A DNA stretch of 64,000 bases from contig SMSO01000025.1 of the NCBI GenBank assembly GCA_004764695.1, positions 1,922,001-1,986,000 of the forward strand, in the 5' to 3' direction. This DNA comes from Schizochytrium sp. TIO01 (taxonomy: Eukaryota; Protista; Bigyra: Labyrinthulomycetes). Positions 21,901 through 45,082 of the stretch are shown piece after piece (the first letter of the stretch is position 1; the number at the start of each line of letters is the position of its first letter). Below the pieces are notes generated by a model, which worked only from the letters and a program-made list of their open reading frames with translations, made no database searches and had not been told where the DNA came from. The translations under genes and the position numbers were made by a program.

Positions 21901-21922
21901 ATACGCTACTAGCGTGCTTCAT
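18917..21922 (-). CDS. Polycystin-2/TRPP-like cation channel with N-terminal tandem DEP domains
   Basis: Two DEP-like repeats (CFVARDLVRWI...ICEEMWKQGLISH; SFRSSELVDWC...RERAIQISQQLLDEGYIYNV). Then TM1, a long loop starting FSDVCTIDSLHDWI, further TMs, a pore helix EFQSPMRASMTLFGSMFGG and an S6-like helix GYLLFSIYLFVVLFIILSLFQALMLESF. Confidence 0.8.
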   Translation of the reverse strand: MKHASSVCQDAWSAARNGGCFVEARNEEEVRLRLRLAERDQVQLEIQNLAIRIQKNGGVEISDRKIAQYVVKACFVARDLVRWIARNHHTTEEMAMLICEEMWKQGLISHATHRFKPFTNATNEHFRVAHPYAIHLRVLPSDLELLSRQLHEISGPKLKDRLVFGSLVRQSFRSSELVDWCMSAHNVYPRERAIQISQQLLDEGYIYNVSGSTRFVDQRDVLCQHKDAYCGNLCLSGRVLEHLIERFNAEYSVLVKGSPGIDHLTVGQCVKILQSLVQDCHDIKARYILSRLRNMQRVEIVAGSGRRRSSIFASPVLETTMTLSAMPLLPAHHRLQQKDIDAICDDDSAIVRIKDLLKPIFTTKLARENPGSPRGVKGPNPRLQRSVTKQGNIYDRILLDNTSKIDLVGSIRKQETQQRALRLLAQLGGKTSQLSYSSITPFKRAMKMLSKLTHILMTLALTLQVISSTHTSLPLNTGIQNAFEARNFSDVCTIDSLHDWIEVHLFRTNFEWLGHHITLADYPQLLVSTPERVSCDRASERFFRARAASSHGLGVVEDIENETTCYIDTQSDEQGLTFDYAKRYTLYWQAQDYADSPMQAINQETFQNLTNVDATALLPVRLMLQLNLLSSFSSIPTITVVRAIAHMGPLENEVFIRTTSAQLMTHGLICAFTWASLLFCVIDFLALTWQRRSRYMKSTSAAIVMTRMVLCLVGLGLQLEHNSRVRSYLDDLWESRNDWSLRQTLGNNVSDHDTWVFLYNADNASQVCLTLSMFFTSVSLLSKLGGSRYNMFDVLMRTLGAVNKDLEVILLVFVTNFIAFSMATYAIMQSAAPEFQSPMRASMTLFGSMFGGAPWRSFHTASVPSLLTGTTGYLLFSIYLFVVLFIILSLFQALMLESFQAQKKQEDVLHNEIKLHMYTSETFHSLGAVQNYLLQKFDIAEHPDKPSSFKNNSYVSVASPTGGSRDGRVNRSNSVPYGSRKIAPFRDPLNSTLSNQDPAKP

Positions 21923-26560: not shown

Positions 26561-27477
26561 GGTCACGCCAACGTAGCAAGCTAGCTTCTACTGAATGAAA
26601 GCTTTCAGACTGTGCAAGACAGACTAAAGCGCTGAGTCTGAGCGCCAATCTAAAGATGTTAGTTTTAAAAAATAGAAGAAGCTTTGGCACCAAGGTACCG
26701 GGTGTTCGTAAGAGAACGTTCGGGGTATCCTTCTTGCTGGCTATTCAGTTGGACTCAATCTCGATCGGCATCCGTGCAGCACGCTGACACGATCTGGTTG
26801 GGCCTAACTTATGGAAAGAATGCCTTTAATGACCTTCAACATTAAAGCGAGTTCAATCCCCGCGCTGCGACAAGTTTTGTTAAGCTCGAGTGCGGCGTGG
26901 AGAAGGAAACCTCTGCCTCTATCCTCAACACGAGGGGTTTGCTGTTTTTTCGTCTTCGAAAATGGTGAGATACGCTCCAGGTCTTGTAATTAGCATAATG
27001 TATACCCATCCTTCTTGGTTTTAAAAATAACCTATAGTGGGATATATAACAGACCAGGAGTAATACGTGTAGTGTGTTGTCCGTCTTCCTCGAGTAGATA
27101 TTAATCTTTGGTTATCAAGCTAAAGAGTGCTGGACTTGTCTTGGAAAATTGCACGGATCTCTATTAATTTGGAGGCGATGTGATCATAAGTTTTTTAGGT
27201 TTTTGTTTTTTTAATATGGCCAAAAGAAAGATGCTTGAGTTAAGTGGTTCTCAGCAAGATGAGATGCAACAACAACGTGACACAATTGCAGAAAAGATTG
27301 CAATGTGCACTTTTTAATTCAAGAAAAGATTGTCATTATCGATAGATAAAGTTGCATATTATTCATGGTGTAGTATCGGAACTATGGTCTCTGAATAGGA
27401 TAGAAATCTCGATATTGAGAGCAGAATGATTTCGTCGTGAGGGAAGCCAAATTTGAGCGTCTCAGCTTTATAATATT

Positions 27478-30261
27478 CTACCTTTTAAAAGGTTCCTCAG
27501 GCGTAGGTGCATTCGAAGACAAGCTGGTTGAAATTGACCCCGCAGACCTCTGTGAGAGGCGTTTGTATATTTCCTGAACACCTGAAGATCCGGGCAGAGA
27601 AGATGCGACCGAGGACGCGAGAGACCGGCGTTCTGATTTTCGTCGTCCTAATGATGCTCGCTTCGGAGTTTCTGAAAGATCAGGAGCTACATCAAGAAGA
27701 CGTCTCGTATTGCTCAGAAAATCTTCTTGAGTTAATGGTTCATTAGCGAAACCAAGACCAGATGATACCCAACGCTCGCAGAGGTCATTGTATGACCATA
27801 CATCCGTATGGTTGGGCAGCAAAAATACGGGGTCTCGGATTGGCTCACCCTGAAGATCAACAAGATCGTCAGAATCAACACTCATGTCTTGCAAAAGCTC
27901 AGGATTAAGACGCAAGCTCATATATGGTACGATGGCATCCATTCGATTCTGTCTCTGCCATTCTGGCCAGGTAGACAACCACTCCTCGAATTGTTCCTCC
28001 GTTACAGCTAAAGCTTCTTCCCTTGCAGCATTGATTTTTTCCTTGCTAATAGAAACTGAATGAGGGAAAATCATCGCTTTTGATGATACAGGCAGGTCTA
28101 AAACGTCACGCAGTTCTATCTCAAAGCGGAGGTATGATGACACATCATCGACACCCCGATCCATTGAGTTGATATAGGCTTCAACATGTTTGTGGACAAT
28201 GTTCAAGCGCATGATACGTCGGCCAAGAGTACGCAATTTCTCGCGGTTTCCACGAGCGTGTGCAATGGCAACAACAACCTGCATTTGCCCCAATGCCCAA
28301 ATAGGTTTGTCTGCGCATGCATCAACAGCATCAAGCATGCGAATGATAATTTCCTCCCGCGAGACAGGATCATTAATAATGATGTCAAGAACCTCTTTCA
28401 CGCGCTCTCTAAGAGCCGGGCGGTACTCTTCAGTAACATATTCTTTCGATTGTAAAAGCATGCTAAGGAACTGCAAGACCCCCCACACGTAAGCTTTATC
28501 AATATGGGCACGCAATTCTTCGGCATTTACGCCAAATTCACGTGCGACGTCTTCAAGCGAGGAAAGTTCAAGGCGGTTAAAGAGAACTAGGACACCCTTG
28601 ATACTGCGCAATTGTTGAATGAGATCATCCGGAAGGTTTGTATCTGCAATATTTACAGCTAGTGGACGCTTGGGAGACCTCGCAATCGATTCAATGGGCA
28701 CACTTTCTAATGATGTACACCCAGCAAGGTTGATTTCTCGTGTGCGGATTAACTGAATCGAAGGTGGAATGTATGTCAGTGATGAACACCCTTCAGCGTT
28801 CAAAGTATCTCCAACAGTGAGGTTCTCTGGCAGTGCCTCAAGTGCAGTGCAGTTAATCAAAATAAGATTGTCACGAATTGTAAGTCCGGCAGGAAGTTCC
28901 TTTAGATTGGTACACCCTGCTAAAACAAGGCTGCCATTGATTTTTTTCAAATTTGGTGGAAGGTACTCAATCTGGGTGCATGCTACTAAGTATATACTGC
29001 CAATAGTCTCTATATTTGCGGGGAGACCCACCAAACTATCATTGATGATACAGTTCAGTTGGCCTTTAACTTGCATGTCAGCTGGTAAAGTAAACGGCGT
29101 TGGGTTATCTAGTCGTAAGATAAGATCTCCATCAAACTTCATTCGTTCGCCAAAGGTTCGAATAGTAACCTTGGATATTACAGCATTGCCCTTTACATGA
29201 AGATCATCGGGCAAATCAATTGTAAAACGAGCATTGTCTTCGGAGACTCTTCCTGATTTAACTCCCATACTGTTACGGCTTGTAGTGTCGGCTGCGTCCT
29301 CTGATTGATGGTCAATTTCCTCTTCACCTCCTTCGCTTTCGTCATCAGGGAGATTGGAGATGTACTCTCGAACGATTGCAAGGTCACGAAGCGCACAAAA
29401 CCCTGGGGCTATTTGACCTGGGTATTTAGGCACCTCAATAATTGTGTCTGTTTGCACTGTAAACTTCGGAAAGTCTTCTCCGAGGTGCAGACGTAAAAAC
29501 TTTTTGGGGGCATTGATGACCCTAAGGGAGTTAGATTCTGGATCCCATCCAATAATCGCCGAAGAAAGCTTGTCCTTGAGAGCAGAGTTCTCACCCAGCA
29601 TATCAAGGGTTGATTGAATTTGCGTGGCGTGCATGGAGTGTTGGGTTCTGGCTTTGAGTTTTGTAGCAGCCCATTCGACTTCGTGTTCTACACAGCGGCC
29701 CGCATTGATAACGCCCAGGCCTAGGGGAGTTAAACATGCTATGGAGAGCGAGCCACATACAGCTGGACAGCAAACACAAACAAGAACACCACTAATGACC
29801 TGTGTAAAGCAATTGCAGCAGCGATTGTTTTCTGAGCAACGCTGTATCCGAGCAACACACGGCAGCCCTAATTCTCCTGGGAGAAAAATTGTGATTGGTA
29901 TCAAGACTGGTACAAGGACTCCAAACAAGACTATGTACATGATACCCTCAATAAATCGTACCCATATGGTCTCAGGTCTGCACCAGTGGTCAATTTGCCA
30001 TGGTCTATAGCACCAAATGGGCGTACAGAGGAGACTCTTGGGTGCTATACCTTCAAGAAAATATGGTTTCCAGTCCTCAGCGTCATATCTCATGCCACAA
30101 CATTTCCCTAAATACACACTCGCAGGCACCGTATGCCTCGAGGCTAGCCGCCTTGCCTCTTTCACAAAGGCGGGATGTTCACCATCCTGACGAAGCCAAG
30201 AGTTGAGCCATTCCTCGTGTGCATGGTGATCGAGGATTTCTTCAAAAGAAGGGTGAGACAT
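27478..30261 (-). CDS. LRR-NEL (IpaH/SspH-type novel E3 ligase)-U-box-like protein, paralogue A, with Cys-rich membrane N-terminus
   Basis: 927-aa intronless ORF. LRRs such as LPENLTVGDTLNAEGCSSL. NEL core MLDAVDACADKPIWALGQM...LGRRIMRL...DDVSSYLRFEIELRDVLDLPV...AMIF...FEEWLSTWPEWQ, with the Cys codon at 28315-28317. Then GEPIRDPVFLLP...CERWV. Confidence 0.85.
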   Translation of the reverse strand: MSHPSFEEILDHHAHEEWLNSWLRQDGEHPAFVKEARRLASRHTVPASVYLGKCCGMRYDAEDWKPYFLEGIAPKSLLCTPIWCYRPWQIDHWCRPETIWVRFIEGIMYIVLFGVLVPVLIPITIFLPGELGLPCVARIQRCSENNRCCNCFTQVISGVLVCVCCPAVCGSLSIACLTPLGLGVINAGRCVEHEVEWAATKLKARTQHSMHATQIQSTLDMLGENSALKDKLSSAIIGWDPESNSLRVINAPKKFLRLHLGEDFPKFTVQTDTIIEVPKYPGQIAPGFCALRDLAIVREYISNLPDDESEGGEEEIDHQSEDAADTTSRNSMGVKSGRVSEDNARFTIDLPDDLHVKGNAVISKVTIRTFGERMKFDGDLILRLDNPTPFTLPADMQVKGQLNCIINDSLVGLPANIETIGSIYLVACTQIEYLPPNLKKINGSLVLAGCTNLKELPAGLTIRDNLILINCTALEALPENLTVGDTLNAEGCSSLTYIPPSIQLIRTREINLAGCTSLESVPIESIARSPKRPLAVNIADTNLPDDLIQQLRSIKGVLVLFNRLELSSLEDVAREFGVNAEELRAHIDKAYVWGVLQFLSMLLQSKEYVTEEYRPALRERVKEVLDIIINDPVSREEIIIRMLDAVDACADKPIWALGQMQVVVAIAHARGNREKLRTLGRRIMRLNIVHKHVEAYINSMDRGVDDVSSYLRFEIELRDVLDLPVSSKAMIFPHSVSISKEKINAAREEALAVTEEQFEEWLSTWPEWQRQNRMDAIVPYMSLRLNPELLQDMSVDSDDLVDLQGEPIRDPVFLLPNHTDVWSYNDLCERWVSSGLGFANEPLTQEDFLSNTRRLLDVAPDLSETPKRASLGRRKSERRSLASSVASSLPGSSGVQEIYKRLSQRSAGSISTSLSSNAPTPEEPFKR

Positions 30262-32458
30262 AGTTTTGAAAAAATCTTTCTTCTGTCCGGCACAGCAGCG
30301 ACTTCACCGAGGCTGCCAGCCAAGGCAAGACTCTTTCAAAGACGGGGTTTGGCGTTGCCACCCAGCCTGAAGAGCTGTCAAGCTTCAATGGAATTTATTT
30401 TGGCTGTTTGCAAGGTCCCTCGCTCGCCCCCTTTTCATTCTTTCCATTACTTCAGGTAGTCAAATTTTTTATTTTTTTTTTAAAATAAAATTGAGGATTG
30501 GCATAAGGTTAAATAATTCCATTGTAGCGTTTCAATTATTCATAATGATTTCTTTTCTTTTAAATTTGTTTTCGTCATTCGTTTATCGATGACTCATTGG
30601 TATACTAAGGTTAATGACGGAGCCAGTCTTTTCCTGGGCTCCTCGCGTATTCAGCTGTGAAGAAAACTGGAATGAGACTGCGTCGAACTCACAAACACCG
30701 GTAAGTTCTTGCAATTGGCCGTGCGGAGAACGATGTTCCTACGTAGACATGTGCAGGAGGACACCGAAATCGCGGGGAGGGAGGAACTATGAAAGCTGTA
30801 TTGGCCAAAATTAAAAATTGTCAGCAGCTGTGCTGGAAAACGATTCTCGGCACGTGCAACAGGGGTATCCAGCACAAGCCTATATCATCAGAGGCTAATT
30901 ACAATATTCGCCTCCTTTGCAGAGATAACTCGGAGGTATGAATGTATAACTGCTTGACGGAATACGAGAGAGATCTTGCAGTTGAATCAGTTGAATAGAT
31001 GCTAATAGATAATTTTAGCGCTCACTAAAGAGAGAAGTTCTCCCGACTTTCGTGCCTTATATGCAAAAGTGCTTTACTTCAAAAGAGAGCACGCAAAATC
31101 GAGAAGCGCTGCCAACGATGACCAATCGCGGGCTTTTCTTCATGCATATCTAAGTTGGTAACCTGTCGATTTTCGTTGGCGCACTTGTTGTGTACCTTCT
31201 GCCTATTTTGTACACGAGTTACGGCGGTGTGGCGTGGCTTCAACGTTGCCGGTTTCAACATAGGAGTCTATGAGCGATTGATTAGGTTTCTCCGATAAAT
31301 CGAGACGCAACTCGAAGTAGAGAAAATGGACTGGAGCTTTGCATCATGTTTTGTTTTGACCTGTGGGTTCGCATCAAGGAACGAGGTCGCAGCGCTAGTA
31401 GCGAAAGGGTCTGCAAAGACGATGTACACACCCAAGTTTCGGTAATGGCTCGGAGACTCGGGCTCAAAGTCACACTACTACAGTGCTGAGTTTTCATTAA
31501 AGTGCGAACTGCATGCAAGTAATGATGAAAGTAATGAATATACGAAGGCAAGACCTGCAACATCTGAAAGGCTCACATTTTCCTGAGTGTGGTGGCAATG
31601 TATTGCAAGGAGAGACGTATTTACCAATGTAAGCTTCTTGGCGGTCCAACAGTATTATTAAATACTTGGCTTGGAAGCTTTAGAGTTTATTGAAGGGAGA
31701 ATGCTTAATGCTATGAATAGTACCACCTAGCTAGAATTAAGTCAAGAATAGGAGATGCATGAAGTCCAGATTAGTGCTCAAGCACTCTCCATGGGCTCCC
31801 CAGTGCTGCTGTGAACAAGCATGATTCGGCAAAGGGTTCATGCCGAATGAAAGTTTTGGCTAGTAGGGGTAATGTGCCAATGGAGATTGAATCATGGAAT
31901 ACATAGGGTGAAAATGTACACATGGGTGAAAGTGAGTGGTGGTGCAAACATCTTATGCCAACATCTTATTATATTATGTAAGGTCACTGGCTTGGAGCAA
32001 TGTTCGAGTATCTCATGCGACAACGCAATATAAAAAGTACGCAGGGTTCACCACTCCCTGTGTAGACACTTTCCATGTTCATCTGCGGAAATGAACTCAA
32101 TTTCCTGACCAAAGTACAAACAATCTTGTCATCTCTGATCTTCGCCCCTGAGGATACTGATAATTACATTCATCATAGTAGTCGATATTGAGGTTTGTAG
32201 TAGCCCAATACCTTCCAGCTTCTAAGACTAATCTAGCTCTGTCCCTGCTTTCAATGGTTGTTTCGAATCTTCTCTCCTGCAAATGCGCCACCACCATGCA
32301 ATGAATGATTCTAGGCCTAACACCTGAGCTATATAGTACTAGTCGCTTTACTTCTACTACTCTGTATCTAGAATAGCTTTTGCTGCTTGCTGGACGATAG
32401 CTTTAGCCCTGTAGTCCTGCAAGCCCGGCGGCGCTGGGCACTCTTCAGCCTGCTAGGA

Positions 32459-32477
32459 CCCCCCCCCCCCCCCCCCC
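32459..32477. repeat. Poly-C tract (19 nt)
   Basis: Directly visible homopolymer. Confidence 0.9.
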
Positions 32478-33052
32478 TCTCGCTATCCGTCTTCATTGTT
32501 CACGTGTTTTCCTGCACGTGCGTTTCCCCCTTTTCACTTACTGGCTGCACGTGCTGAAGGAATGGCGAGATGCAGTGGCTCTTCGTAGGGTGGTAAAAAG
32601 TCGAGCGACTGATTTTCGAACTTTGAGCAACAGGGGTTTTCAAGAGGGGGGAAATGGCCATCAAAAACGGGAAATAGGTTTAGTTATACTACGGTTGAGA
32701 GGAAGAAGCCCTGTACATACGATAAGAGACGGGGTTGTACGTATCGAGGGCTAATCATCACAATCAGGGTTCGCTCCCCATGCCAGAGGCGATGGCGAGG
32801 ATACTTCTACTGTTACTTCTACGGTGCAGAGCTATTATTCAGGGTGGCGGCTTCTGCAAATGCACGCCGTGATATCTCCAAGCAGGGAAGAAAGCAAACG
32901 GCCTCAATCATCAAGGCTTTCATGGACTCAATCAGGTGAGTCAGAGTCCATGATAAGAAGTTAATGATGGACCCAGTTAAAACAAGGCCTCGGCCAGTCT
33001 CAAGGCGTTTGCGAACTGCTGTTGATACGTTGTGATAGTAATGTCTTTTCAG

Positions 33053-36000
33053 TCATCGCTCGAAATCATTTTCAGGAATGGGCGCAGTGTTGGTGCTGGC
33101 AGAAAACCTAATAGGATATCGACCAGAGGATACCCGTGGATGTTGCTGGGATACACGACGAGAACCTTCGGGTCTTCTTTCTACTGATCCCCGAGTCATA
33201 AATTGTGGTGTTGAAGAGGAAATTCTCTTCATATATACATCGTGACTTGGCGAAACCATATTGTTGGTTTTAAATGTCCGGGAGCTGCTATGGCGAGAGC
33301 TACTCTGCCTGGAGTTGTTATTCTGTTCAAAAGTCCTTGCAGCCTCAATTGAGTCTTCTTGAGCAGCAACTTCAAGGTCAAGGTCAGCTTCGTTGTTGTG
33401 CAGTATGTCTTCTTTAAAATGAGGCTGCATTCGAGATTCTTGACGCTTACGACTACGGCGCAAACGCTGAATAAAGCTTCCCTCACGAACACCAACACCA
33501 CTTGTAGCTTCTTCTTCGTCGTCAGAATCCTCCTCGATCTCTTCCGGGATCACAGCTACTTTAGATTGTGCAAGTGATGTCGACACTCTTCGTTGGCGAC
33601 GAAGAGATTCGCGGCGGCCTAGTGAAGCGCGCTGCGGCGTTTCCAAGGTGGTTGGTTTTGTGTCAAGAAGGCGGTGAAGATGGCTGAAAAAGTCTTCCTT
33701 TGAGACAGCCATGTTGTTAAAATCAAGCCCAGTGGAGACCCATCGCTCACAAAGATCATTGTAGGACCATACATTACTATGGTCGGGTAAGAGGAAGACT
33801 GGATCAGTCATCGGCTCGCCCTTCAGATCTGTAAGGTCTGTTGGATCGACATTTGGGAGCTCAAAGAGCAAGGTTTCATGGCGTTGCAAGTCCAGATAGG
33901 GAACAACGGCCTCCATGCGTTCCTGTCGCTGCCACTCAGGCCAGGTAGCAAGCCACGCTTCAAACCGCTTCTCTCCGATGGCAAGTGCATCACGTTTAGC
34001 AGCCAAAATAACAGGAGCTGGGATTGGGACATGACGTGCATAGATCATAGCTTTAGACGACACAGGTAGGTCTAGCGCATCGCGCAGTTCAATCTCAAAC
34101 CGCAGATACACACAGACATCGTCTACATCGCGCTCCTGTTCATTGATGAAGCGGTTAACATGCTCGTGGACGACACTGAGGCGCATAATCCCACGACCAA
34201 GCTTGCGAAGCTTAGCGCGATCCCCTCGCGCGTGTGCGACTGCTGCGACTACTTGCATCTGCCCTAGTGCCCAAATAGGTTTGTCAGCACACGCATCAAC
34301 GGCGTCAAGCATTCGCAAAACGAGTTCCTGTCTAGCTACAGGGTCAGTCATGATAAGTTGCAAGACCTCGTGCACCCTATTTTTCAGGTCTGGTCGTATT
34401 TTCTCGTCTTTGTACTCTTGTGAAGACAGGAGCATAGACAAGAACTGCAAAACTCCGCGTAAATAAGCAGGGTCGATGTAAGGCTCTAGGTCTGACGCCT
34501 GGATATTGAACTCTCGGGCGACGTCGAAGAGGGAGCTCAGCTTAACTTCTCCATCACTCTCATTGTTTGCACCTAACTGGCGCAAAAGCTCGCTTTCATT
34601 GCCTAGAAAGATTGTCACATTTGCGGCTGCGCCTATGGAACGGAGTGCATCAAGCTGGCTTCCAACGAGACTAGTGTTTTGAAGATTGATCAGTAGCCTC
34701 TCAGATCGTGGAGCCTCGAGGGGCGTAATAGGAAGCGAAAAAAGGTTCACACAGTTGCTAAAATCTAAGAGGTTACCACGCAGCACCAAGCTATCGGATA
34801 TATACCTGAGCTCTGTACAATCGGTAGCAATAAGGTCTCCGTTCACAGTAAGGTTTCGCGGCAGGCACTGCAGAGAAACACATCCGCGAAGAAAAAGGCT
34901 TCCATCGACAGTTAGATTATCCGGGAGAGACACCAAACTTGAGCAACCATCTAATATTAGATCGCCCTGAATTAGAGAAAGTGTTTCTGGCAACGATGCA
35001 AGGGATATGCAGGTATGAAGGTTCAAAGATCCAGTGCTTGTCCAGTCAGGCAAGCTTCTTAGCTGAGTGCACTCCTGCAAGAAAACTTGTCCATCAACGA
35101 TGAGGTCATTAGGTAGATTCTCAATCAAGCCGTCCGTATCTATAACGCAAAGGCTTCCTAATTTCATCTTCGATCCCCATCGAAGAACCTGGACATTGTA
35201 CAGAAACAAACAACCTCTAATTTTCAAGTCATCTGGCATGATCAAAAGAGAGGAAAGCCCTTCTTTGTTATTATCCATCTCACCTGCATCCAATGCTGGA
35301 ACTGAGGCAAATGCCATGTCACCCTCAACTTGAATACCAGACGGGAGCTGCTCAGGCAGCTTGAGGTCCTCTGTACTAAGTCTAACTTGCTCAACAAGAA
35401 TTAGTAAATCGCTACTGACTACACGTAGCTTCGGAATTTTCGAGCCAAGTCGCAATTGCAACGGGGTGTTTGGGGTCATGCGAATGCTCAATGTAGAGCT
35501 TTCTTCCTGCCATTTTAGCCATTCTACTGGAGAACGTCTCAATGAGTCCCTGACATCTTCACTCTTAATCTCACCAATTGCTTTGGAGTATTCATGGCTG
35601 TGAAGACAACGAATGCACTGTGTCCGACACGGAATATTATTTATACATGTGCGTGAGGTGTGGGAACACGCAGCAGCAATGCTACTAGGGCTACACGCGC
35701 TAAAAGTTGCTGCAATCTTGTTCCCAAGACCTTGACCGCAGGTCACTGTGCACTCATGGCAAGAAGCTGCGCATAATGTACAAGAGCGACGTTTGCACGA
35801 CTCTACCAGAACGTCACGAGTAGCAACACAGCCACGCTGTATATCAGTACTGTGTGACTGCACTGGTTTAGCTGCTACAACGAGCAGCGGTCCAATAAGA
35901 GCCAAAGGTACCAGGGTCATACCCACAAACCCATACATACCATAGGTAAGAGCAACCGTCCAAGAGCCCCCAAACTCACATTCGTGTTCGTCCTCCTCAC

Positions 36001-36418
36001 TGCAGGGCCGACTGCATGTGAACGAATCATAGCTATCATAAGTGGGCTCTAAACTGGTACAATAGGCACAAACCGCGCAAGGCATGCACTCGAGGAAGGC
36101 TTGCGCGTACATGAGTCCAGAGAGTCCTCCTAAACAGCAGTATTGTACACCACGCTCTTCATCAAATGCCTTCAGGTCCACAAGTCCTTGGCAAACCAGA
36201 AGCCCTGCAATGATGGAGCCGCTATCCACCTCGTCAGAGAGGACCAGAGGCACCATATTGTTGCAGCACCTGCCAACGCAGCTTTGGCGAGCCTCCAAAG
36301 TGGTTTCCCGTGACACAGCCTCATAGAGTGACCTGCTCACAAGCTCAGCTGCCTGCGAACACGCGTGAGGGCTGGCCCGCGACGCCTCAACTCGCGTGGG
36401 AGCCGCTGAGGCAGCCAT
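33053..36418 (-). CDS. LRR-NEL-U-box-like protein, paralogue B, with very Cys-rich membrane N-terminus
   Basis: ATG at 36418 (MAASAAP) gives 1121 aa. LRRs such as LPDNLTVDGSLFLRGCVSL. NEL MLDAVDACADKPIWALGQM (Cys codon 34289-34291)...DDVCVYLRFEIELRDALDLPV...FEAWLATWPEWQ. Then GEPMTDPVFLLP. Confidence 0.85.
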   Translation of the reverse strand: MAASAAPTRVEASRASPHACSQAAELVSRSLYEAVSRETTLEARQSCVGRCCNNMVPLVLSDEVDSGSIIAGLLVCQGLVDLKAFDEERGVQYCCLGGLSGLMYAQAFLECMPCAVCAYCTSLEPTYDSYDSFTCSRPCSEEDEHECEFGGSWTVALTYGMYGFVGMTLVPLALIGPLLVVAAKPVQSHSTDIQRGCVATRDVLVESCKRRSCTLCAASCHECTVTCGQGLGNKIAATFSACSPSSIAAACSHTSRTCINNIPCRTQCIRCLHSHEYSKAIGEIKSEDVRDSLRRSPVEWLKWQEESSTLSIRMTPNTPLQLRLGSKIPKLRVVSSDLLILVEQVRLSTEDLKLPEQLPSGIQVEGDMAFASVPALDAGEMDNNKEGLSSLLIMPDDLKIRGCLFLYNVQVLRWGSKMKLGSLCVIDTDGLIENLPNDLIVDGQVFLQECTQLRSLPDWTSTGSLNLHTCISLASLPETLSLIQGDLILDGCSSLVSLPDNLTVDGSLFLRGCVSLQCLPRNLTVNGDLIATDCTELRYISDSLVLRGNLLDFSNCVNLFSLPITPLEAPRSERLLINLQNTSLVGSQLDALRSIGAAANVTIFLGNESELLRQLGANNESDGEVKLSSLFDVAREFNIQASDLEPYIDPAYLRGVLQFLSMLLSSQEYKDEKIRPDLKNRVHEVLQLIMTDPVARQELVLRMLDAVDACADKPIWALGQMQVVAAVAHARGDRAKLRKLGRGIMRLSVVHEHVNRFINEQERDVDDVCVYLRFEIELRDALDLPVSSKAMIYARHVPIPAPVILAAKRDALAIGEKRFEAWLATWPEWQRQERMEAVVPYLDLQRHETLLFELPNVDPTDLTDLKGEPMTDPVFLLPDHSNVWSYNDLCERWVSTGLDFNNMAVSKEDFFSHLHRLLDTKPTTLETPQRASLGRRESLRRQRRVSTSLAQSKVAVIPEEIEEDSDDEEEATSGVGVREGSFIQRLRRSRKRQESRMQPHFKEDILHNNEADLDLEVAAQEDSIEAARTFEQNNNSRQSSSRHSSSRTFKTNNMVSPSHDVYMKRISSSTPQFMTRGSVERRPEGSRRVSQQHPRVSSGRYPIRFSASTNTAPIPENDFER

Positions 36419-38412
36419 TTTTCTAGGTATGTGGTGTGATCTTGGTGATCTCACGTATACATCTATCTAATCTATGAATGGGAGGTTGTATGAGGAATAT
36501 GTGAAAGAAACCAGACGTGGCGGCGAAGGAGCGGCACGTGCAAACTTCGAAGAGCAAAAGTAGAGCTCCTTGAGGATTTACGAAAGACGACCAGCTTCTG
36601 CTTAGCCAGCTCGCTACCTGGTTGACTGACTGCGTGCCTAGCTGACCTGCTGGATGTGAAAGGGTGATCCCAGACAAAGCGCGCCAGCTTAGTCGAGAAG
36701 GAGGAATGAAGGAGGGGATTGATTGATTGATCAATATGTATAATAAGGCTCTCTATCTGCTAATTTTCACTTTATTCCTACTTTTTCCCCTATTTTATTC
36801 AGTATAAGGGCACTTTTTTAATTTCGCTGAATAGCAATCATGACTAGGAAGTGTTAGTATCAGTAGAAATAATTAGGTATCTCCCAAAGTTTGGTGGTGG
36901 AAATGATCATGCGAAAGACTTTCTATTCAGCTGTTCACGAGTTGCAAGAGGGCCCTGATCGTAATCACGATCGACACACAGCAGGTACTGGTCGTGAACC
37001 TTTCCTCGGCATGTCTCGATATGATTTCTGCGTTGGATAAATGTGTGCAACATATTGCTTCTGCAAATTGTGTTCTTCTTCAAGGTCATCAACTCTTTCA
37101 GTACAACGATCCATGAATGATGAATTTGCACAAGCTATCAAGCACTGCCATTAAGATGTAGTTAGTTACTTTTATAGGTATTCAAGCATTCACAAGACGA
37201 AGATGTAGTACAGAAGAAACCCATCTGTGCATCGAAAGTTGCAACCTTTAAGACTGGGCTTTGCCCTACATGGAGGCAAAACTCTGCACTGGCACGAGGT
37301 GGTAACTCCCGCGCCCACATCATAAGAGGCCACAGATACTACGTAAGCCCACTCTGGGAGTCCGCTCAATCTTCACGCCCCCCTCCTCCGCGAGTTCGGA
37401 GCTCTCGATTGATGACACGGACCTCCAAATCGCATAGCATCAAAGGCTCTGGTTCCCATAGCTTTTACCTTCCAATAGGCAGGTAGATACTACTAAGCAT
37501 TTAGTAAAAGTTATAAATCAGAAATAACAAAATCAGTAAATAACAATTAAAAAAAGCAGCCACTGAGAGTTATTCATCTGTCAATCAGGTCTTGACAAGT
37601 ATCATTTCATCGTTGAGATCTTCAGGTGAGCCTTCAGTTTATACTTCGTAAAGCGGGCTAAATGAGGGATGGCGTGTGGCACCATTCAGGATCATGGTCG
37701 TCAGCACCCCCGAAGAATTCTAGTTTTAATTAAAAAAACTGGAAAAAATCTGATTAGTAAATACTACGATAGGAAGTACCGAAATAAGCTAGGAATTACC
37801 TATACCAGCATAGGATATCCGCACGTGCACGATAGTATTGAGCACTGCTAAGCTAGTCCTAGTGCTCAGACATGATAGTGCACGTAGAAAGGTAATAAAC
37901 TGCAATCTACTGCTACTACTACTTGCCAGCGAGCCTGCAGTCATGCATTGAGCTATGGCTAGAGGGGCCTGCGAATCTCCCAAACTTGAACTTAGTCGTC
38001 AGGTTTTCTCTTTTCGAAGAGCAACATATTTTGCTGTGCTAATTTGTTAATGTATTGTCAAACACGCACCCTGACTGAACCGCTATGGTGCGCACGTGAA
38101 TTTATCACACGAGCAAAAAACTGCATTATCAGGGCAGCAAGAGCTTGAATACGGCCAAACAATGTCGTTATAACCCAATGGAGAAGCCGAGGCTCCTTTA
38201 AACCTCAACGCACTTAATTAATATGAATACAATGCCTCAAACTATATCCCGGATTTCCGTTTTTAAAAAAAGTTTGTATGTGCACGTTAGAAATTAGTTA
38301 ACCTTTGAGAACCCCTTTTAGCCAAAACTTTGGGCAGAACAGGATTAGATTTCGCAGGTCGAATATCAAATCAAACACTAGAGTCAGAACTCCACCACTG
38401 AGATCTGAGAGA

Positions 38413-40496
38413 ATGAACTTCCTTCGTGCGGCAGGCACCTAGGCCGGCCTGCCCATCAGAGCCATTAGAAGGTTGAGTATTCGTACTGCTAGCTCGATGA
38501 CGCTTGTTAAATCCCCAGTCGAGACCCTGGAGGAAAAGATTGGTGAAGTAAGAAGACAAATCGTCCAAAGAGAAACAGACCTCATGCAACTATTCTCTGC
38601 GTTGGCGAGTCTCAAGACCAATCGCGAAGAGGTTATACACAAGAAAGAACGGTTAGAGGCATCAGCTCTTGGGAAGATTTCTGGTGACGACTTTGATATG
38701 ACTGAAAGCGTTCTGCGCCTTGCCTGGCACAGAACAGATGAAGATTTCAAAGATCGCCTTAAGGAACTATCTAAAGAAGAAAAAAAGACCTTCAAATCGG
38801 CAATAGATAAGATCCCACAAAAGCTAGACGCTGGGAAACAGGCGAGTGATCTGGATCAAGCTATCACGAGTCTAAATGATAAAATTGACAGTCTTGACGC
38901 TATGATTCAAACACTTGGGAGAAAGCAGGATGCTTACGAGGCTCAGTCTAAGCTCATTCGCGCTGGAATGGGAACAGCGCTTGATAAACTGAGCATTTTT
39001 TTTTCAAGCTTAGAATCGGGGTACAGCAATTCAAAAGTCGTACAGACTCAACAAATACGGCAAGATACCCCGCGTCGCCCAAGTCTGTACATACCTTAGA
39101 TATACCAAGTCTCCTGGATCGCTGTCGCAAGATGGGCTTCATCAAATCTTTGCAGGCGGGTCAAACTAGCACTTCATTGTACCAAGTAATGCGACCTGAA
39201 GAATCATTTTTCATCGAAACTGAGGCATCTTTGACTCCCGCTGCTGGCCTTCTCTTGGTTACTATACTTCGCACCTTAAAAGATGGAAATATAGCCCAGA
39301 CTCCCCTAAACATGACTTGTTACGTTGGTCCTGCATCAAGCATGGCTGGAACCGCTGGCTTTTCTATCGATACTAAGGAGGATAATTCAAATAAGTTCCA
39401 ACCTTTGTTCGTCGGGGAACTAAAGGGACCTGGGTTTGATCATATTAACCTCTCCATGAAGTACTGCGACTCTACTAGTACAGGAAAAGAATCTGGGTCG
39501 CAGCGTCATGCTACCTACTCAGTGATCCGGCAGTTGTACAATTATATGCTCTTAAATGGTCTTCTGTTAGGTATCTACACGAACTACGACGACACGGCAC
39601 TTTTCTTCCGCGATTGTTCTGGCAACTTGATGATCACACCATCAGTCAGGTGTGACGCAGTTAGTGATTTGGGTGAAAACAGAGTCAGCGCGGCTCAGCT
39701 CATAGCATTAGGCATCATGATTGCGAATGGACGTTGCGTACCAGTGATTGAGATTCTCGAGGACGGAGTTCTTGTTGAATGTGACTGGACAGGCACATGT
39801 AAAGGGCATAAAAAATTACCCATGAATTGCCAGGCGAAATTTGACCGTCTTTCGAATAGTGAGAGAGGTGTTGAACCTGCTTTAACTCCCGATGATGATT
39901 TAGAAATATTCTACGCCGCTTCACTCAACCCAGATGGATCTCCAATTCCCTTCGTTGATCTTGGTGAGCGAGAACCTCTTTTGACTGGCCGGACTGGCTA
40001 GACCTTCCGCCTCAGCCTCCTGCGTGGTGCAACCGAAAAAGTGGATGGTGTACTGAAGTTGTTTGACTTATTTAAATGAAAAGACCAAGTCAAGGAACTA
40101 ACTCATGAAGCCGCAATTTACAAAGAATTGGAGTCACTTCAAGGCAAATGAATTCCAGAGTACCTCGATCACGGCATGTTCCGAGAGGATTTCCTGTACG
40201 GTCTCGGTACAGTTTTCTCGGGTGATCCTGTTACCGACGAGGATCTCACCGGTAAATTTGTGGAGGAGGCTGTAAATGCTCTCCAGAGGATTCACTCTCT
40301 AGGAATACTACACGGTGATGTGTGACGGCCTAATGTCCTTTGCAACAATAAAAGCAACAAAAAGAGCCCAATGATCTTTGACTTCGGTATGGCAAAACGC
40401 AAAGAAGATATGGATCCAGAAGTTTTCAGGATATGTACTGTACAGGAGATTAGGGATCTTCGCGTCGAATTACTGACAACTCGCTCTGACAACTAG
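38413..40496 (+). pseudogene. Pseudogene of a coiled-coil + restriction-endonuclease-fold + protein kinase (Crinkler/CR-effector-like)
   Basis: One reading path runs from ATG 38413 through in-frame stops at 38440, 39999, 40077, 40149 and 40323 and a frameshift most likely at the T9 run 38996-39004. It contains FVGELKGP...VIRQLYNYMLLNGLLLGIYTNY (PD-(D/E)xK-like) and kinase motifs GRTG, VLK, HEAAIYKELESLQG, ALQRIHSLGILHGDV*RPN and DFGMA. Confidence 0.8.
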
Positions 40497-40685
40497 AAAT
40501 TAAACCCAGACGCAACTAGCCAAAGCAACTTGGGTAAGCGCGTCTATATAGTTATCCCTCAATTTCTCTTCTCTCTTCACAGCTTTTGGAGTGCTAAGAA
40601 GCGATTAAAATAGAAATCAGGTAGTGTTGATTGCTGAATAGAAACCCGTGGTCTTTCGGTACTTGATCCTTCTCTCTCTCCTTCT

Positions 40686-40735
40686 CTATCTATCTATCTA
40701 TCTATCTATTATTATTATTATTATTAATATTATTA
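40686..40735. repeat. Compound (TCTA)n(TTA)n microsatellite
   Basis: Directly visible. Confidence 0.85.
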
Positions 40736-42082
40736 TAGTTATAACTATTTTTGAAAGAAAGCAAAAGACCTTTGAAAGACTCGGAGAGAATGGAAAACAA
40801 ACAGCCTAAAGTGCCATAGATAGCAATCCCTGGGTCTGGGCCAATGATGTATCTAGTTAGTATCTATAGTAGTAGTAGTAAACAGGGGTCAGATTTGTTT
40901 GTAAGGGAACATAGGGAACCTGATTGAGTTCATCTACTTTGCACGATGAACTTTTTAAGTATCATCACAGAATTGGGTTCAATGCTTGTGGTGGGAACAT
41001 GGCTTTCTCCCCCCTCTATCTACTCGTCAACACATCATCTCAAATAAGTACGGTGCAGGCAGGATATTCCAGCTTCTAGCAGAGTTGTGCATCTTTGCTT
41101 CATTTCTAAGATGTTCTCATTATATCGCCGGTTGCCATTGGACGAAAGCCCCACTACTAGATAAATACCCTCACAGGGAGCCCAGGCAATGCTTAGGTGA
41201 TGCTTGAACCCTGATCAAAGCGATTGCCAGCGTTTCATCAGCTTTCTTCGCTTGTTTTCTTTCCCGAGTTTCTGTTCGATCCCAAGTTCCTTCTCTCAGC
41301 TTCTTCAATCATTTTACTCACATCGATATGCTCGAGTATAGATTCCGATGGTAACGAATGATGTCATGACAACTACAGCCTAATAACGAATACGTCAAAA
41401 ACCTTTGCCTTCCTTGGCTCGATTTCGAGCGCCTCTAGCTAGGTAACCATCGGCCAAGTGCTATGCCTTGGCTCAAATTCTCGAGCTTGGAGAGAAAGGG
41501 CTGATTCGTAAGGCACTAAGCTTTGGTAGGTATGCACACTGCAAACTATCGGGGTGTGCGGTCTGCAAGCGAGGGAAGAGACCTCTTCGTACCATGAAAG
41601 TAGCTCCAGTTTCACTTACTCACTCACTTACTCATTCATTCACTCGCTCACTACCTTGGCATGGCAAATGATTGAGTGTACGAAGCTTTTGCCTACCTAC
41701 ACATCTATCGCTGACCGCTGAAGAGCTTGGCCGCAACCTAAGGAAGGCTAGGAATTCCGATTCCCTTCTGCTCTTCCGAATCCATAAGTTGCTTAAACGA
41801 GTGAGCTGGTCAGTCAGTTAGTTGCCTAAACTCGCGAGGGAGCATACGCTGACTCAATCGGAGCCCACCGTCGACGACTGTCATCTCGCGACGTGTGCTT
41901 CTGTGCCCGGGAAGAAAGGTACCCAACCCACCCATCAACTGCGTCAAGAAAGCAAAAGCGCCCGTTTGAAGCAGTAGAAGTGACGGGCTCAGCTTGAACA
42001 CGACGAGAGAGAAGGAGAAGCAAACATAATCACAACCAACAGAAAGAAAAACACACACCCCAATAAAAGCGACGACGAAACC

Positions 42083-42113
42083 AACAAACAAACAAACAAA
42101 CAAACAAACAAAC
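42083..42113. repeat. (AAAC)n microsatellite
   Basis: Directly visible. Confidence 0.85.
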
Positions 42114-42517
42114 TTCCCTATCGTTAGCTCTGCCTAGAGTCGAATACCTGACTATACTAGCTAATGCCGCATTCAGGAAGTACGAGCTCCGTACGGAAGA
42201 AGAGTGAAAGAAGCGATTGGGACATTCTTCAATCGCGCACTTGCACTTGCACTTGCAGCACTTGCAGCACTTGCAGCAAAGGAGTGGAATAAGTACTAGG
42301 GGGCTCCTACCTAGGTAGGGAGCCTCAAGCATTCGGCTGCGTAGGGAGTCCGTCGCTCGCTCACTCATTTGATCACATAGTTCGTCAGCGCGATCAGACC
42401 ACCGCTACTGACTGCGAGGGTCGTCGAACTTGCCGCACACGCTGGTTGCGGTCGGGCAGGTGGCAATCATATCGTAATCGACACACCAATTGATCGATCG
42501 TCTCCTGATTGATTAGG

Positions 42518-45082
42518 ATGAGCCGCGCAAGGTCTGCCGTGGCGGCAGCCACGGATGCCTCGTGGGTAAGTCGCGACTCACGTATGGAACTTGCGTTTGC
42601 CAAAACGCTTGCGCACACTCGACTTGCAGCTCAGAAACGGGAGCTGCGAGGGGCTTCGAGTGAATCAAGACACAGGTTAAGCACGTTGGCTGAAGAAAGT
42701 GGCACAGACGTCGAAAGTCACTCCTCGAAAACATCCTCGGGCAGAAATATTGCACAAAGTCTTGCTCGAAATGCTGGAGGGCTTGATGAAGAGGACAGTG
42801 AATTGTTGGAGGATTTTGAAAACTTTGAAGCAAGTCCTACGAAAAGTGGAGATGAAAGCGCGGAGAATGGCACACATATGAGACGAGGTCAAGAAATCGT
42901 TGAGACGCGAAGTGCCAAATCGAATGTGCTTAGAACGATGACATGTTTTCTTAAACAGCCTCGTATGAAAAATGCTGGTCATCGCGGAACAATTGGAGGC
43001 ACAGTGCCATGGCACAAGGACTCACGAGCCCTGCGTGAGCTGAGAAAACTTGATCCTGATTCTCTATTTGTAAAAAGCCTCATGGCAGACCATGTACGTC
43101 TACAGTGGGATTCAGATAGTAGAATCATCCGCGTGACAAACCTTCCGTCTGAAGTCTTGGTACTTGACCTCATTGACCAATTTCTACCAATGCAGATTAT
43201 GGGCAATGTAATGATCGTTGCCAGTATGAAGAAGCACAGCAAACATGCTCTTCCGTCTGGTCTCCATATTCGCGGTAATCTATTACTTATGACTGAATTT
43301 GATGAAGAAGGAGATTTCACAAACCCAGCACAGATCAGTCTCCCAAATAGCCTATACGTTGGAGGCAACCTCATGCTACTCAATATCGAAGTCCTACGCT
43401 GGGGGTCGCCCATATGGATTGGCGGCGATTTTGCTGTACGTGAGGCAATGCCATGGTTAGTTGAACTCCCAGCATTTGCAGAGCTAGGAGGTACCTTGGA
43501 CTGCCGCGGGTGCACGATGCTTAGGGAACTTCCTAAACTTGTCGAACACTTTAATACGATTCTTTTGGATGGCTGCACCTCTCTAGAAACCTTGCCAGTT
43601 GCTCTCGCAAGTGTTCAAGGTGATTTGAGCCTTGTTGGATGTAAAGCTCTCAAGAGCTTACCTGACTATCTCATCGTTGAAGGGGGTCTGTACTTGCAGA
43701 ATTGCACCAGTCTTACGGCTCTCCCAAGCCTACTCACAGTCATTGGAGACGTAAACTTACAAGGTGCAATTCGCCTCAACAGAGTTCCTGTAAACATCAA
43801 TCTCTGTGGTGGTAAGCTCGACCTTCGAGACTGCATCTCGTTGCGTCGTCTCCCTCTTGCGCCATTTGAACGCAAGCGTTCCCGAAGGCTTATTGTTGAT
43901 GCTCGAGGGACTTCAATTGACCCTGTGACATGTAAAGTTCTGCGCTCCATTGAAACTGACACTGTTAAATTTCAACTAGACCCTAGTGCTTTCATGTCCA
44001 GCACTCTGCCGTCCCAAGATAGCCAGTCGGGCGATGTGACAGACCAACTAGGCAATGATCATACAACTGACCCCAGCTCTGAAACGACTAATCCTAGGAG
44101 AAGAAAAACGCAAGTGCTTCTTGAAATGCAAAACATTGAGTCTGTATGCTCTGTTACAGATGCCTTGGAGCTCTTTGGTATGCAAGATATTGCATTAGAA
44201 AGACATATTGATTATGCATACCATCGGGATGTTATTGAATTTCTCAAGCTACTGGCATCAAGTCTCGAAAACCGTGTTCCCGAGTTGCGCAAACTTCTCA
44301 AGCGCCGTCTTAGAGACGTTCTTGAGATTGCTGCCAATGACGATGTGGCGAGAGAAGAGATCCTCTTTCGTATTGTCGACTCTGTGGACACGTGTGTTGA
44401 CAAACCGATTTGGGCGCTTGGCCAAATGGAGCTGGTTGCTGCCTTGGCTCACGCTCGTGGAAATCGAACGCAGCTTCGTGTGCTTGGCCGTGGTGTTATG
44501 CGTCTTGGTATTGTACATAAGCATGCGGCGATTGTGCTTAATGCTAGCGACCTCGACGTTGACGATGTGTGTGTCTACTTAAAGTTTGAGTTGGCATTAA
44601 GAGATGCTTTGCAGCTGCCTGTTTCCCCACATGCTATGGAATGGGATCAATATGTCAATATTGACCCTCATGAGATTGCTGCTGCCAGAGCAGAAGCAAT
44701 CGGCATTACAGATGAAGCATTTGAGAACTGGCTAGAGGAATGGCCTCCCTGGCAAACTCAATTGCGCTCAGAAGCAATTGTCCCCTACGAGTCATTGAAG
44801 TCTCCAGAATTATCTATGGACATTAACCTTGCTGATGCCACAGATCTCTATGGAGAGCCAATACTTGACCCGGTGCTCGTTCTTCCAGACATTGCCAATC
44901 CTTGGTCTTACAAGGAGCTTTGTACTCACTGGGTAAGGACGGGTATGGATTTTTCGAACAACGTAATATCCCCTTCCCAATTTCTGCCACGTGTTCAAAA
45001 GTTGCGTCAACGCGATCTATCAAAGCAATCAAGCTTTAAGCGACGCCTATCCAAACGAATGTCACAGTTTGGAACGGCCTGA
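42518..45082 (+). CDS. LRR-NEL-U-box-like protein, paralogue C, with soluble disordered N-terminus
   Basis: First ATG 42518 (start uncertain). LRRs such as LPDYLIVEGGLYLQNCTSL. NEL IVDSVDTCVDKPIWALGQM (Cys codon 44393-44395)...LGRGVMRL...DDVCVYLKFELALRDALQLPV...FENWLEEWPPWQ. Then GEPILDPVLVLP. Confidence 0.85.
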   Translation: MSRARSAVAAATDASWVSRDSRMELAFAKTLAHTRLAAQKRELRGASSESRHRLSTLAEESGTDVESHSSKTSSGRNIAQSLARNAGGLDEEDSELLEDFENFEASPTKSGDESAENGTHMRRGQEIVETRSAKSNVLRTMTCFLKQPRMKNAGHRGTIGGTVPWHKDSRALRELRKLDPDSLFVKSLMADHVRLQWDSDSRIIRVTNLPSEVLVLDLIDQFLPMQIMGNVMIVASMKKHSKHALPSGLHIRGNLLLMTEFDEEGDFTNPAQISLPNSLYVGGNLMLLNIEVLRWGSPIWIGGDFAVREAMPWLVELPAFAELGGTLDCRGCTMLRELPKLVEHFNTILLDGCTSLETLPVALASVQGDLSLVGCKALKSLPDYLIVEGGLYLQNCTSLTALPSLLTVIGDVNLQGAIRLNRVPVNINLCGGKLDLRDCISLRRLPLAPFERKRSRRLIVDARGTSIDPVTCKVLRSIETDTVKFQLDPSAFMSSTLPSQDSQSGDVTDQLGNDHTTDPSSETTNPRRRKTQVLLEMQNIESVCSVTDALELFGMQDIALERHIDYAYHRDVIEFLKLLASSLENRVPELRKLLKRRLRDVLEIAANDDVAREEILFRIVDSVDTCVDKPIWALGQMELVAALAHARGNRTQLRVLGRGVMRLGIVHKHAAIVLNASDLDVDDVCVYLKFELALRDALQLPVSPHAMEWDQYVNIDPHEIAAARAEAIGITDEAFENWLEEWPPWQTQLRSEAIVPYESLKSPELSMDINLADATDLYGEPILDPVLVLPDIANPWSYKELCTHWVRTGMDFSNNVISPSQFLPRVQKLRQRDLSKQSSFKRRLSKRMSQFGTA

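Follow-up and report, generated by a model that had tools for sequence, protein, structure and literature searches.

The window analyzed here, a stretch of 64,000 nucleotides from the thraustochytrid Schizochytrium sp. TIO01 that corresponds to 1.92-1.99 Mb of contig C24, contains three genes, A, B and C, which encode leucine-rich repeats (LRRs) followed by a NEL ubiquitin ligase domain and by a C-terminal module with the homology and predicted fold of a U-box. A note made earlier from the letters alone, hereafter the original prediction, had described three open reading frames (ORFs) with LRRs ahead of a conserved block, and all three were found where it had placed them, intact and intron-less. 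Gene A lies at 27478-30261 of the minus strand and encodes 927 amino acids. Gene B (33053-36418, minus strand) encodes 1121 amino acids from the ATG at 36418, its open frame extending to a GTG at 36454 (33053-36454), and gene C (42518-45082, plus strand) encodes 854 amino acids from the ATG at 42518 within an open frame that starts upstream (42509-45082).

In the product of gene A, a Cys-rich N-terminus with two transmembrane (TM) segments predicted by hydropathy inside the Cys-rich stretch (residues 109-127 and 159-177) precedes the LRR region, a linker, the NEL domain, the U-box and a Ser-rich tail. The product of gene B starts with a Cys-rich N-terminus (8.2% Cys) containing one predicted TM segment (residues 164-182), followed by LRR, NEL, U-box and a long low-complexity tail. 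In C, a soluble N-terminus in which hydropathy indicated no TM segment leads into LRR, NEL and U-box. Pairwise identity among the three proteins amounted to 52-66% in the NEL domain, 40-61% in the U-box and 33-37% in the LRRs, and was at noise level in the N-termini.

NEL domain, repeats and C-terminal module

The Pfam NEL profile (PF14496), whose curated cut-off is 24 bits, matched A, B and C with 91.4, 89.6 and 77.4 bits (E values of 6.8e-26, 2.4e-25 and 1.4e-21), far above that cut-off; elsewhere in the genome, 17 more matches exceeded it. Supported in A by Pfam, the AlphaFold2 model and VIA-align, the domain spans residues 595-790 (27892-28479, minus strand); it spans residues 656-851 in B (33866-34453, minus strand) and 571-766 in C (44228-44815, plus strand). 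A sequence search of the Protein Data Bank (PDB) with A matched SlrP (E 4.4e-7), IpaH9.8, IpaH3, IpaH7.8, IpaH1.4 and SspH1. When A and SlrP are aligned, C-A-D coincides with the C-E-D of SlrP, which bears the active-site cysteine. The catalytic cysteines proposed by the original prediction proved exact: Cys649 of A in C-A-D (codon 28315-28317, minus strand), Cys710 of B in C-A-D (34289-34291, minus strand) and Cys626 of C in C-V-D (44393-44395, plus strand). Both the Cys and the Asp of this C-x-D motif are invariant in 17 paralogues of the genome, together with about 20 other positions of the domain.

An AlphaFold2 model of the NEL domain plus tail of A, built on the alignment of the 17 paralogues, reached a mean predicted local distance difference test (pLDDT) value of 85.5 and had the all-helical NEL fold. 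The top nine Foldseek matches of this model were all NEL structures (IpaH3, 4e-5; SspH2, 2e-4), and VIA-align gave Z scores of 18.9 with SspH2, 15.0 with SlrP and 14.5 with IpaH3 over 204-208 aligned residues (model residues 1-213). The assignment to the NEL family, for which the original prediction had named both the profile and the structural comparison as checks, was borne out by profile, PDB sequence matches and fold, and A, B and C are genuine NEL-family ligase genes.

Ahead of the NEL domain stand about nine LRR units of 21 residues with the form LP.(D/N)L.V.G.L.L..C..L. In A, this region comprises residues 341-545 (28627-29241, minus strand). Its best match among solved structures was the LRR of the plant TNL protein RPP1 (E 1.4e-9), and LRRs of this type also matched PF23952-type LRRs. 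The repeats are not of the LPX type of IpaH and SspH, the alignment of A to the LRR of SlrP being insignificant. The likeness to IpaH, SspH and SlrP that the original prediction saw in the NEL motifs and the C-x-D holds but does not extend to the repeats, and the closest relatives are not these effectors but a subgroup of NEL proteins that bear a U-box.

A C-terminal module of 60-70 residues was present in all 17 intact paralogues, with the pattern G-(D/E)-P-x-x-D-P-V ... W-S ... L ... W-V-x-T-G-x-D. It covers residues 791-860 in A (27682-27891, minus strand), 852-925 in B (33644-33865, minus strand) and 767-835 in C (44816-45022, plus strand). A profile of 31 tails, 17 from the TIO01 genome and 14 bacterial, matched the Prp19 U-box in the PDB with E values of 1.9e-6, 5.8e-6 and 6.3e-5, followed by E4B (0.0067) and LubX (0.02). 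In the NEL plus tail model of A, residues 232-300 superposed on the U-boxes of Prp19, Ufd2, E4B and AvrPtoB (VIA-align Z 4.5-7.1), the fold matches of this part all being U-boxes; for Prp19, Z was 5.0-5.3 with a root-mean-square deviation (rmsd) of 1.9-2.1 over 54-55 residues (54 of 56 at an rmsd of about 2.0). When the tail was modelled alone (pLDDT 75), the top 45 or so Foldseek matches were nearly all U-boxes, with a couple of RING-type structures, and the best had probabilities of 0.9-0.99. A protein-atlas search gave weak leads only (below 0.9; NleG and U-box clusters), which were not used as evidence. At the level of homology and modelled fold, the module is established as a U-box, and it may supply a docking site for the E2 enzyme.

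Chromosomal setting, paralogues and transcription

A six-frame search of the genome (64 Mb, 37 contigs) returned 19 NEL matches, which correspond to 18 loci on nine contigs, 17 of them with open frames. The family thus consists of at least 17 intact paralogues and one broken copy, in agreement with the expansion that had been proposed from the window. A frame change with an internal TAA splits the NEL match of the broken copy (C31:2872556-2873105; L018, L019), whose open frame stops shortly after the VDDV block and contains no U-box; this copy is probably a pseudogene. Two paralogues carry other domains before NEL and U-box. One on contig C3 (G000:C3:204800-216653; L024:230-10000 and L006) has an open frame of 3468 codons with many SAM domains, and one on contig C34 (L021:5792-10000 and L002) has an open frame of 1683 codons with a SPRY domain and RI-type LRRs. 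Such front ends show that domains were shuffled once the family had settled in the eukaryote.

The neighbours of A, B and C are genes for a DEP-DEP-polycystin channel, delta-tubulin, a class III aminotransferase and Pex2/Pex12. The delta-tubulin gene (25121-26566, minus strand; Pfam Tubulin E 1.8e-36) lies directly downstream of gene A and serves as a synteny marker shared with Hondaea. The original prediction had invoked spliced eukaryotic genes at the flanks as an argument against contamination; their eukaryotic character stands and the argument with it, but the flank genes that were checked are single ORFs. The ORF of the channel (18917-21922, minus strand, 1001 amino acids) places two DEP domains before a polycystin-type cation channel (DEP, E 6e-24; PKD_channel, 1.4e-7). 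Between B and C lie two adjacent ORFs on the plus strand, 38473-39099, with sub-threshold coiled-coil-type Pfam matches only, and 39132-40001, with none.

These data bear on the alternative that would explain the island by bacterial contamination or by a chimeric join of the assembly. It could draw on the fact that the family is otherwise known from bacteria and that its closest named non-eukaryotic kin could live in a protist culture. Against it, the 18 loci are spread over nine multi-megabase contigs with eukaryotic genes on both sides and between the copies. The GC content at third codon positions equals that of the neighbours (0.41 in A, 0.46 in B and 0.42 in C versus 0.38-0.42), DNA of gene A was found in 20 public runs from nine independent studies, and copies are fused to SPRY and SAM domains. 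Identity to the bacterial proteins is only about 27-35%, and the gene order is conserved in Hondaea. Contamination and a chimeric join are effectively refuted and, for practical purposes, excluded: A, B and C are resident nuclear genes of a eukaryote.

The expression check suggested with the original prediction was answered for gene A, in that transcript-like contigs were found in four runs guessed to be RNA. These four runs were compared over positions 26300-32299. Contigs of gene A extended over 27263-30430 in run X20, 27351-30398 in X18 and 27446-30351 in X16, and over 27365-28262 plus 28250-30429 in X9, none of them with joints. Positions 30500-31299 were uncovered in all four runs and 27100-27299 were empty in three of the four; the trace in X20 came from a tubulin contig that ends at 27054 and a gene A contig that starts at 27263. 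The tubulin contig was separate and had a depth very different from that of the gene A contig. The outermost limits of the RNA-type contigs give an approximate transcribed unit of 27263-30430 (minus strand) with no intron, and gene A is probably transcribed into an unspliced mRNA of about 3 kb. MMETSP transcripts exist for relatives of the family.

As a separate observation, all four runs contained one high-depth contig (1.9-6.6 kb, depth 135-440) that matches the window only at 30449-30466 and 32079-32096. In it, the two 18-base stretches stand about 448 bases apart in an order not colinear with the genome, and the rest is unlike the window; they are possibly short repeats common to a highly expressed gene or element elsewhere.

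Relatives and probable direction of transfer

The nearest named proteins belong to two thraustochytrids, Hondaea fermentalgiana and Mucochytrium quahogii, the Mucochytrium sequence being taken from an MMETSP transcriptome; several records are labelled Durusdinium trenchii. The single-protist acquisition of the original prediction therefore has to be modified, since the family also occurs in Hondaea, Mucochytrium and Durusdinium-labelled records and the event was old. The Hondaea protein P0004 has a NEL domain at residues 568-743 and a tubulin domain at 922-1181, which are 57% and 68% identical, respectively, to their counterparts in the window. Named 'Tubulin beta/delta chain', P0004 is a public gene model that fuses an LRR-NEL-U-box gene with the adjacent delta-tubulin gene. 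The order and orientation of NEL followed by delta-tubulin are common to Hondaea and the window, which indicates that the locus predates the split of the two genera; the Hondaea synteny rests on the merged model P0004.

Automatic labels in these species are 'NEL domain-containing protein' (Mucochytrium quahogii) and 'Disease resistance protein TAO1' and 'Tubulin delta chain' (Hondaea). Other Hondaea members are named TAO1 or RPP5 after their LRRs, and the names hide the family. Six D. trenchii-labelled proteins, three named so by the source and three assigned from the CAK9 series, fall among or beside the thraustochytrid groups, on contigs that measure 5-28 kb. Genuine dinoflagellate genes are one possible source, a labyrinthulomycete contaminant of the assembly another.

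Searched with a profile, 1.84 billion representative proteins yielded 2000 matches, 220 of them below 1e-30, and the best 150 relatives split into two sets by active site and tail. Proteins of the first set share the active site x-C-x-D-K-P-(I/V)-W-A-L, the protist-type tail and scores above 200 bits; those with names are all from Labyrinthulomycetes or labelled Durusdinium. The second (139-197 bits) has S-C-x-D-R-(I/V)-I and a U-box-like tail of the form C-P-I-(S/T)-Q ... P-V ... V-Y-D-Y ... G-x-D-P-x-T-R. Its named members are all called 'NEL-type E3 ubiquitin ligase domain-containing protein' and come from metagenome-assembled genomes of Candidatus Rhabdochlamydia and from a Rhabdochlamydiaceae symbiont of Dictyostelium giganteum. 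The 1.74 Mb chromosome of this symbiont (NZ_OZ197277.1) carries 17 LRR-NEL-U-box copies, three of them with an internal stop (L035-L049, L103, L105-L108). In the chlamydial phylum, 80 of 401 sampled genomes contained NEL, about nine of them with a long match over NEL and U-box (135-172 bits) and the rest with NEL-only proteins (40-95 bits). Four of 401 sampled Pseudomonadota matched at E <= 1e-15, the U-box type being found only in Endozoicomonas, in one copy per genome in the single genome concerned. A scan of a collection of genome contigs with patterns derived from the protist alignment gave no match.

The relationship is not confined to one domain. BLASTP aligned residues 350-777 of A with residues 292-746 of P0160 in a single colinear alignment of 472 columns that runs from LRR through linker to NEL (E 1e-38), which indicates that the whole LRR-linker-NEL unit is shared across domains of life. 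The LRR of A is 35% identical to that of the Rhabdochlamydia protein P0133 with a common 21-residue unit (E 3e-25). The U-box tails of protist and bacterial-type proteins could be aligned, and the order LRR, linker, NEL and U-box is common to both. As judged from these sequence comparisons, the proteins of Rhabdochlamydiaceae and of metagenomes with this architecture are the closest non-eukaryotic relatives.

Two trees were computed, which covered the phylogeny of bacterial and eukaryotic NEL matches that the original prediction had called for. Tree 1 comprised 172 sequences of NEL plus tail (LG+G4, quick search, rooted on Pseudomonas NEL) and set a eukaryote-type clade of 93 sequences (SH-aLRT 96), which takes in 17 paralogues of the genome itself and about 73 sequences from outside it, apart from a bacterial-type clade of 77 (support 100). 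Tree 2 comprised 107 sequences (core NEL columns only, LG+G4, careful search), with NEL-only proteins of chlamydiae and Pseudomonas added. Here, the eukaryote clade (100/100) stood beside 16 bacterial-type metagenome proteins (96/90), both together stood next to the U-box forms of chlamydiae, Endozoicomonas and others (91/58), and the NEL-only proteins fell outside. That the eukaryote clade is monophyletic and groups with U-box-bearing bacterial-type proteins is, on these alignments, a solid result. The 16 sister proteins come from metagenome contigs of JGI, ENA and Logan, with several paralogues on one contig of 16-21 kb, and have an Ala/Pro/Arg-rich look; in the sister group, a JGI contig of 21,463 bases carries P0093 and P0194-P0196, and an ENA contig of 180,939 bases carries P0198; two scans of metagenome contigs for this group gave no match. 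One further protein, P0083 (CAK9086939.1, labelled D. trenchii), has the bacterial-type active site S-C-E-D-R together with a U-box tail of protist type and forms a long branch outside both clades.

Taken together, we consider it likely that A, B and C belong to an intron-less nuclear family of thraustochytrid LRR-NEL-U-box ligases that was exchanged as a unit with Rhabdochlamydiaceae-type bacteria and then expanded. Several points weigh against this explanation or parts of it. The 16 sister proteins have no taxon, and calling them bacterial is an assumption. In an approximately unbiased (AU) test, a single clade of bacterial-type U-box proteins apart from the eukaryotes was not rejected (p 0.52), the constrained tree being 0.7 log units better, so that nesting of the eukaryotes in bacteria is unsupported and the direction of transfer has to be argued from distribution alone; a claim of such nesting was dropped for this reason. 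At a threshold of E <= 1, the Pfam U-box profile (PF04564) matched neither the tail of a window protein nor any of six full-length proteins, of which one is labelled Durusdinium and five are of bacterial type, two of these five being chlamydial. Protist copies lack, in the second U-box loop, the Pro/Thr pattern that chlamydial copies retain, and with this pattern lost, docking of the E2 may be altered and its mode may differ. The mRNA of gene A is read from contigs, not from reads, in runs whose RNA nature is a guess.

With regard to direction, an old transfer of the whole gene from a bacterium to a protist is the favoured reading. It is favoured because bacteria commonly have NEL-only and LRR-NEL proteins, which are absent from other eukaryotes as far as names were obtained, and the transfer would be old because the composition is fully ameliorated and the synteny is common to two genera. 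The horizontal acquisition from an intracellular bacterium put forward in the original prediction is in keeping with closest kin that are obligate intracellular bacteria and with a shared architecture that fits transfer between domains; direction and donor, for their part, are not settled by the tree.

In the reverse scenario, the LRR-NEL-U-box gene, or at least the fusion of NEL to U-box, arose in a eukaryote, and chlamydiae and other host-associated bacteria captured it from protist hosts. Such bacteria have captured other ubiquitin-system domains in this way, the U-box is typically eukaryotic, the chlamydial copies sit in symbionts of protists, the eukaryote clade is large and deep with its 93 of 172 sequences in tree 1, and the AU test allows reciprocal monophyly. 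However, NEL-only proteins are widespread in bacteria (the 80 of 401 chlamydial-phylum genomes and many Pseudomonas) and fall outside the U-box group on the Pseudomonas-rooted tree, the named eukaryotic holders are only Labyrinthulomycetes and Durusdinium-labelled records, and LRR followed by NEL is the standard layout of bacterial effectors. We regard the reverse scenario as improbable and retain transfer from bacterium to protist.

Possible role and comparison with known systems

In the IpaH/SspH family, ubiquitin arrives on a charged UbcH5-type E2, is taken over by the NEL cysteine and goes from there to a substrate bound by the N-terminal repeat domain. By homology with that family we infer what follows on enzymatic activity, substrates, U-box and cellular role. 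The LRR module, or the SPRY or SAM module, would select a substrate on a membrane surface or within the cytoplasm of the protist itself, A and B acting at the membrane and C in the cytosol. The NEL cysteine would accept ubiquitin as a thioester from a charged UbcH5-type E2 and pass it to the substrate as in IpaH and SspH; the genome has at least 20 UQ_con E2 genes, one of them at G000:C24:4258154-4258564. The U-box could be an E2 dock in cis that feeds E2~Ub to the NEL cysteine, or a second, non-covalent RING-like E3/E4 site for chain building. Substrate selection by the recognition module would accord with its variability and with its faster evolution relative to the ligase.

As to history, the whole gene was probably exchanged, before the lineages of Hondaea and Schizochytrium sp. 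TIO01 split, between ancestral thraustochytrids and bacteria of Rhabdochlamydiaceae type that were intracellular or associated with hosts, most likely from bacterium to protist. Duplication, faster divergence of the LRRs and N-terminal domain shuffling would then have followed.

A domesticated chlamydia-type effector may have been expanded into a recognition-plus-ligase family for cell-autonomous defence or self/non-self surveillance, with the membrane forms A and B guarding endomembranes and with targets such as intracellular bacteria, giant-virus or mirusvirus factories or foreign proteins being sent to ubiquitin-dependent destruction. A defence role like that of TRIM and NLR families is an attractive speculation, and as a specific reading we hold it to be tentative and rather unlikely.

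The proteins might instead be the protist's own exported effectors, released via the ectoplasmic net or secreted into prey, hosts or competitors, where they would rewire the ubiquitin system. Some thraustochytrids are parasitic, Mucochytrium quahogii has a member, and the family is expanded with a fast-evolving recognition domain as in effector families. Nevertheless, neither inspection by eye nor a hydropathy scan, which were used here with no signal-peptide predictor applied, revealed an N-terminal hydrophobic stretch in A, B or C, and the internal TM segments predicted in A and B are typical of membrane anchors; both features argue against a secreted effector. Moreover, the family is equally present in saprotrophic production strains (the 20 run holders of the nine studies), and SPRY and SAM partners are domains of intracellular signalling proteins. 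Export is, in our judgement, very improbable, and action inside the protist cell is the reading that we carry forward.

Reviews have presented NEL ligases as a purely bacterial means of attack on the ubiquitin system of the host (PMC9320238, 2022; PMC13720258, October 2026), the later one as mainly proteobacterial. Within the literature covered by our search, NEL genes were not reported from eukaryotes, thraustochytrids or chlamydiae, a NEL-U-box fusion was not described, and no paper dealt with the Rhabdochlamydiaceae NEL proteins, which are annotated automatically, or with the 17-copy family of the symbiont; the supplements of an A. limacinum proteome paper contained no NEL terms. The novelty claimed by the original prediction is upheld with respect to the literature, with the reservation that UniProt and NCBI already label relatives as NEL proteins automatically. 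What is new is that an established catalytic family occurs in another domain of life and is joined to a new domain partner, the U-box.

The bacteria-only rule for NEL is broken by a stably inherited, expressed and expanded eukaryotic family, a natural experiment in which an effector fold is under the control of a cell whose ubiquitin system it uses. The NEL-U-box fusion, which chlamydiae also have, raises the mechanistic question of whether a RING-like E2 dock feeds a thioester cysteine in cis. If the defence reading were true, this would be the first eukaryotic use of NEL catalysis and a ligase with two mechanisms, thioester plus U-box. Since thraustochytrids are transformable production organisms, knock-outs, localization and substrate hunts are feasible, and the 17 copies in a 1.7 Mb symbiont suggest a large unexplored effector family in symbionts of protists.

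Compared with IpaH, SspH1, SspH2 and SlrP, the protist proteins have the same succession of LRR and NEL, the same all-helical fold (Z 14.5-18.9), a C-x-D aligned residue for residue, and the blocks LGR..MRL, VD(D/E)(V/I)..YL.F(E/Q) and W..W.PW. Identity is about 20%, and the protist proteins are encoded and transcribed in a eukaryote with no secretion system involved; they are not bacterial proteins injected by such a system, their genes lying on a eukaryotic chromosome between tubulin and Pex2/12. The repeats are 21-residue, Cys-containing and like those of plant TNL proteins and PF23952, whereas those of IpaH are of the 20-residue LPX type. A U-box takes the place of the helical C-terminal end of IpaH, and membrane anchors, SPRY or SAM stand where proteins of the IpaH/SspH type have a secretion signal.

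The NEL proteins of Rhabdochlamydiaceae share 21-residue LRRs, linker, NEL and U-box with the protist family and are likewise multi-copy (17 in 1.74 Mb). They differ in the active site, S-C-(D/N)-D-R-(I/V) as against (A/T)-C-x-D-K-P-I-W-A-L, and in a U-box closer to the canonical C-P-x...P-V...Y-D-Y...D-P than that of the protists. They also form a separate clade (100 vs 96), reside in a bacterial genome and are presumably secreted into a host.

With the U-box ligases Prp19, E4B/Ufd2 and CHIP, and the bacterial LubX, NleG and AvrPtoB, the family has in common its 60-70 C-terminal residues, which match Prp19 by profile and fold; in contrast, the protist U-box is unseen by PF04564 and sits behind a thioester-forming NEL domain. 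TRIM proteins with SPRY and LRR-bearing immune receptors likewise combine a variable recognition module with a conserved ligase in expanded families whose recognition part diverges faster. The likeness is one of design only, the catalytic part being non-homologous.

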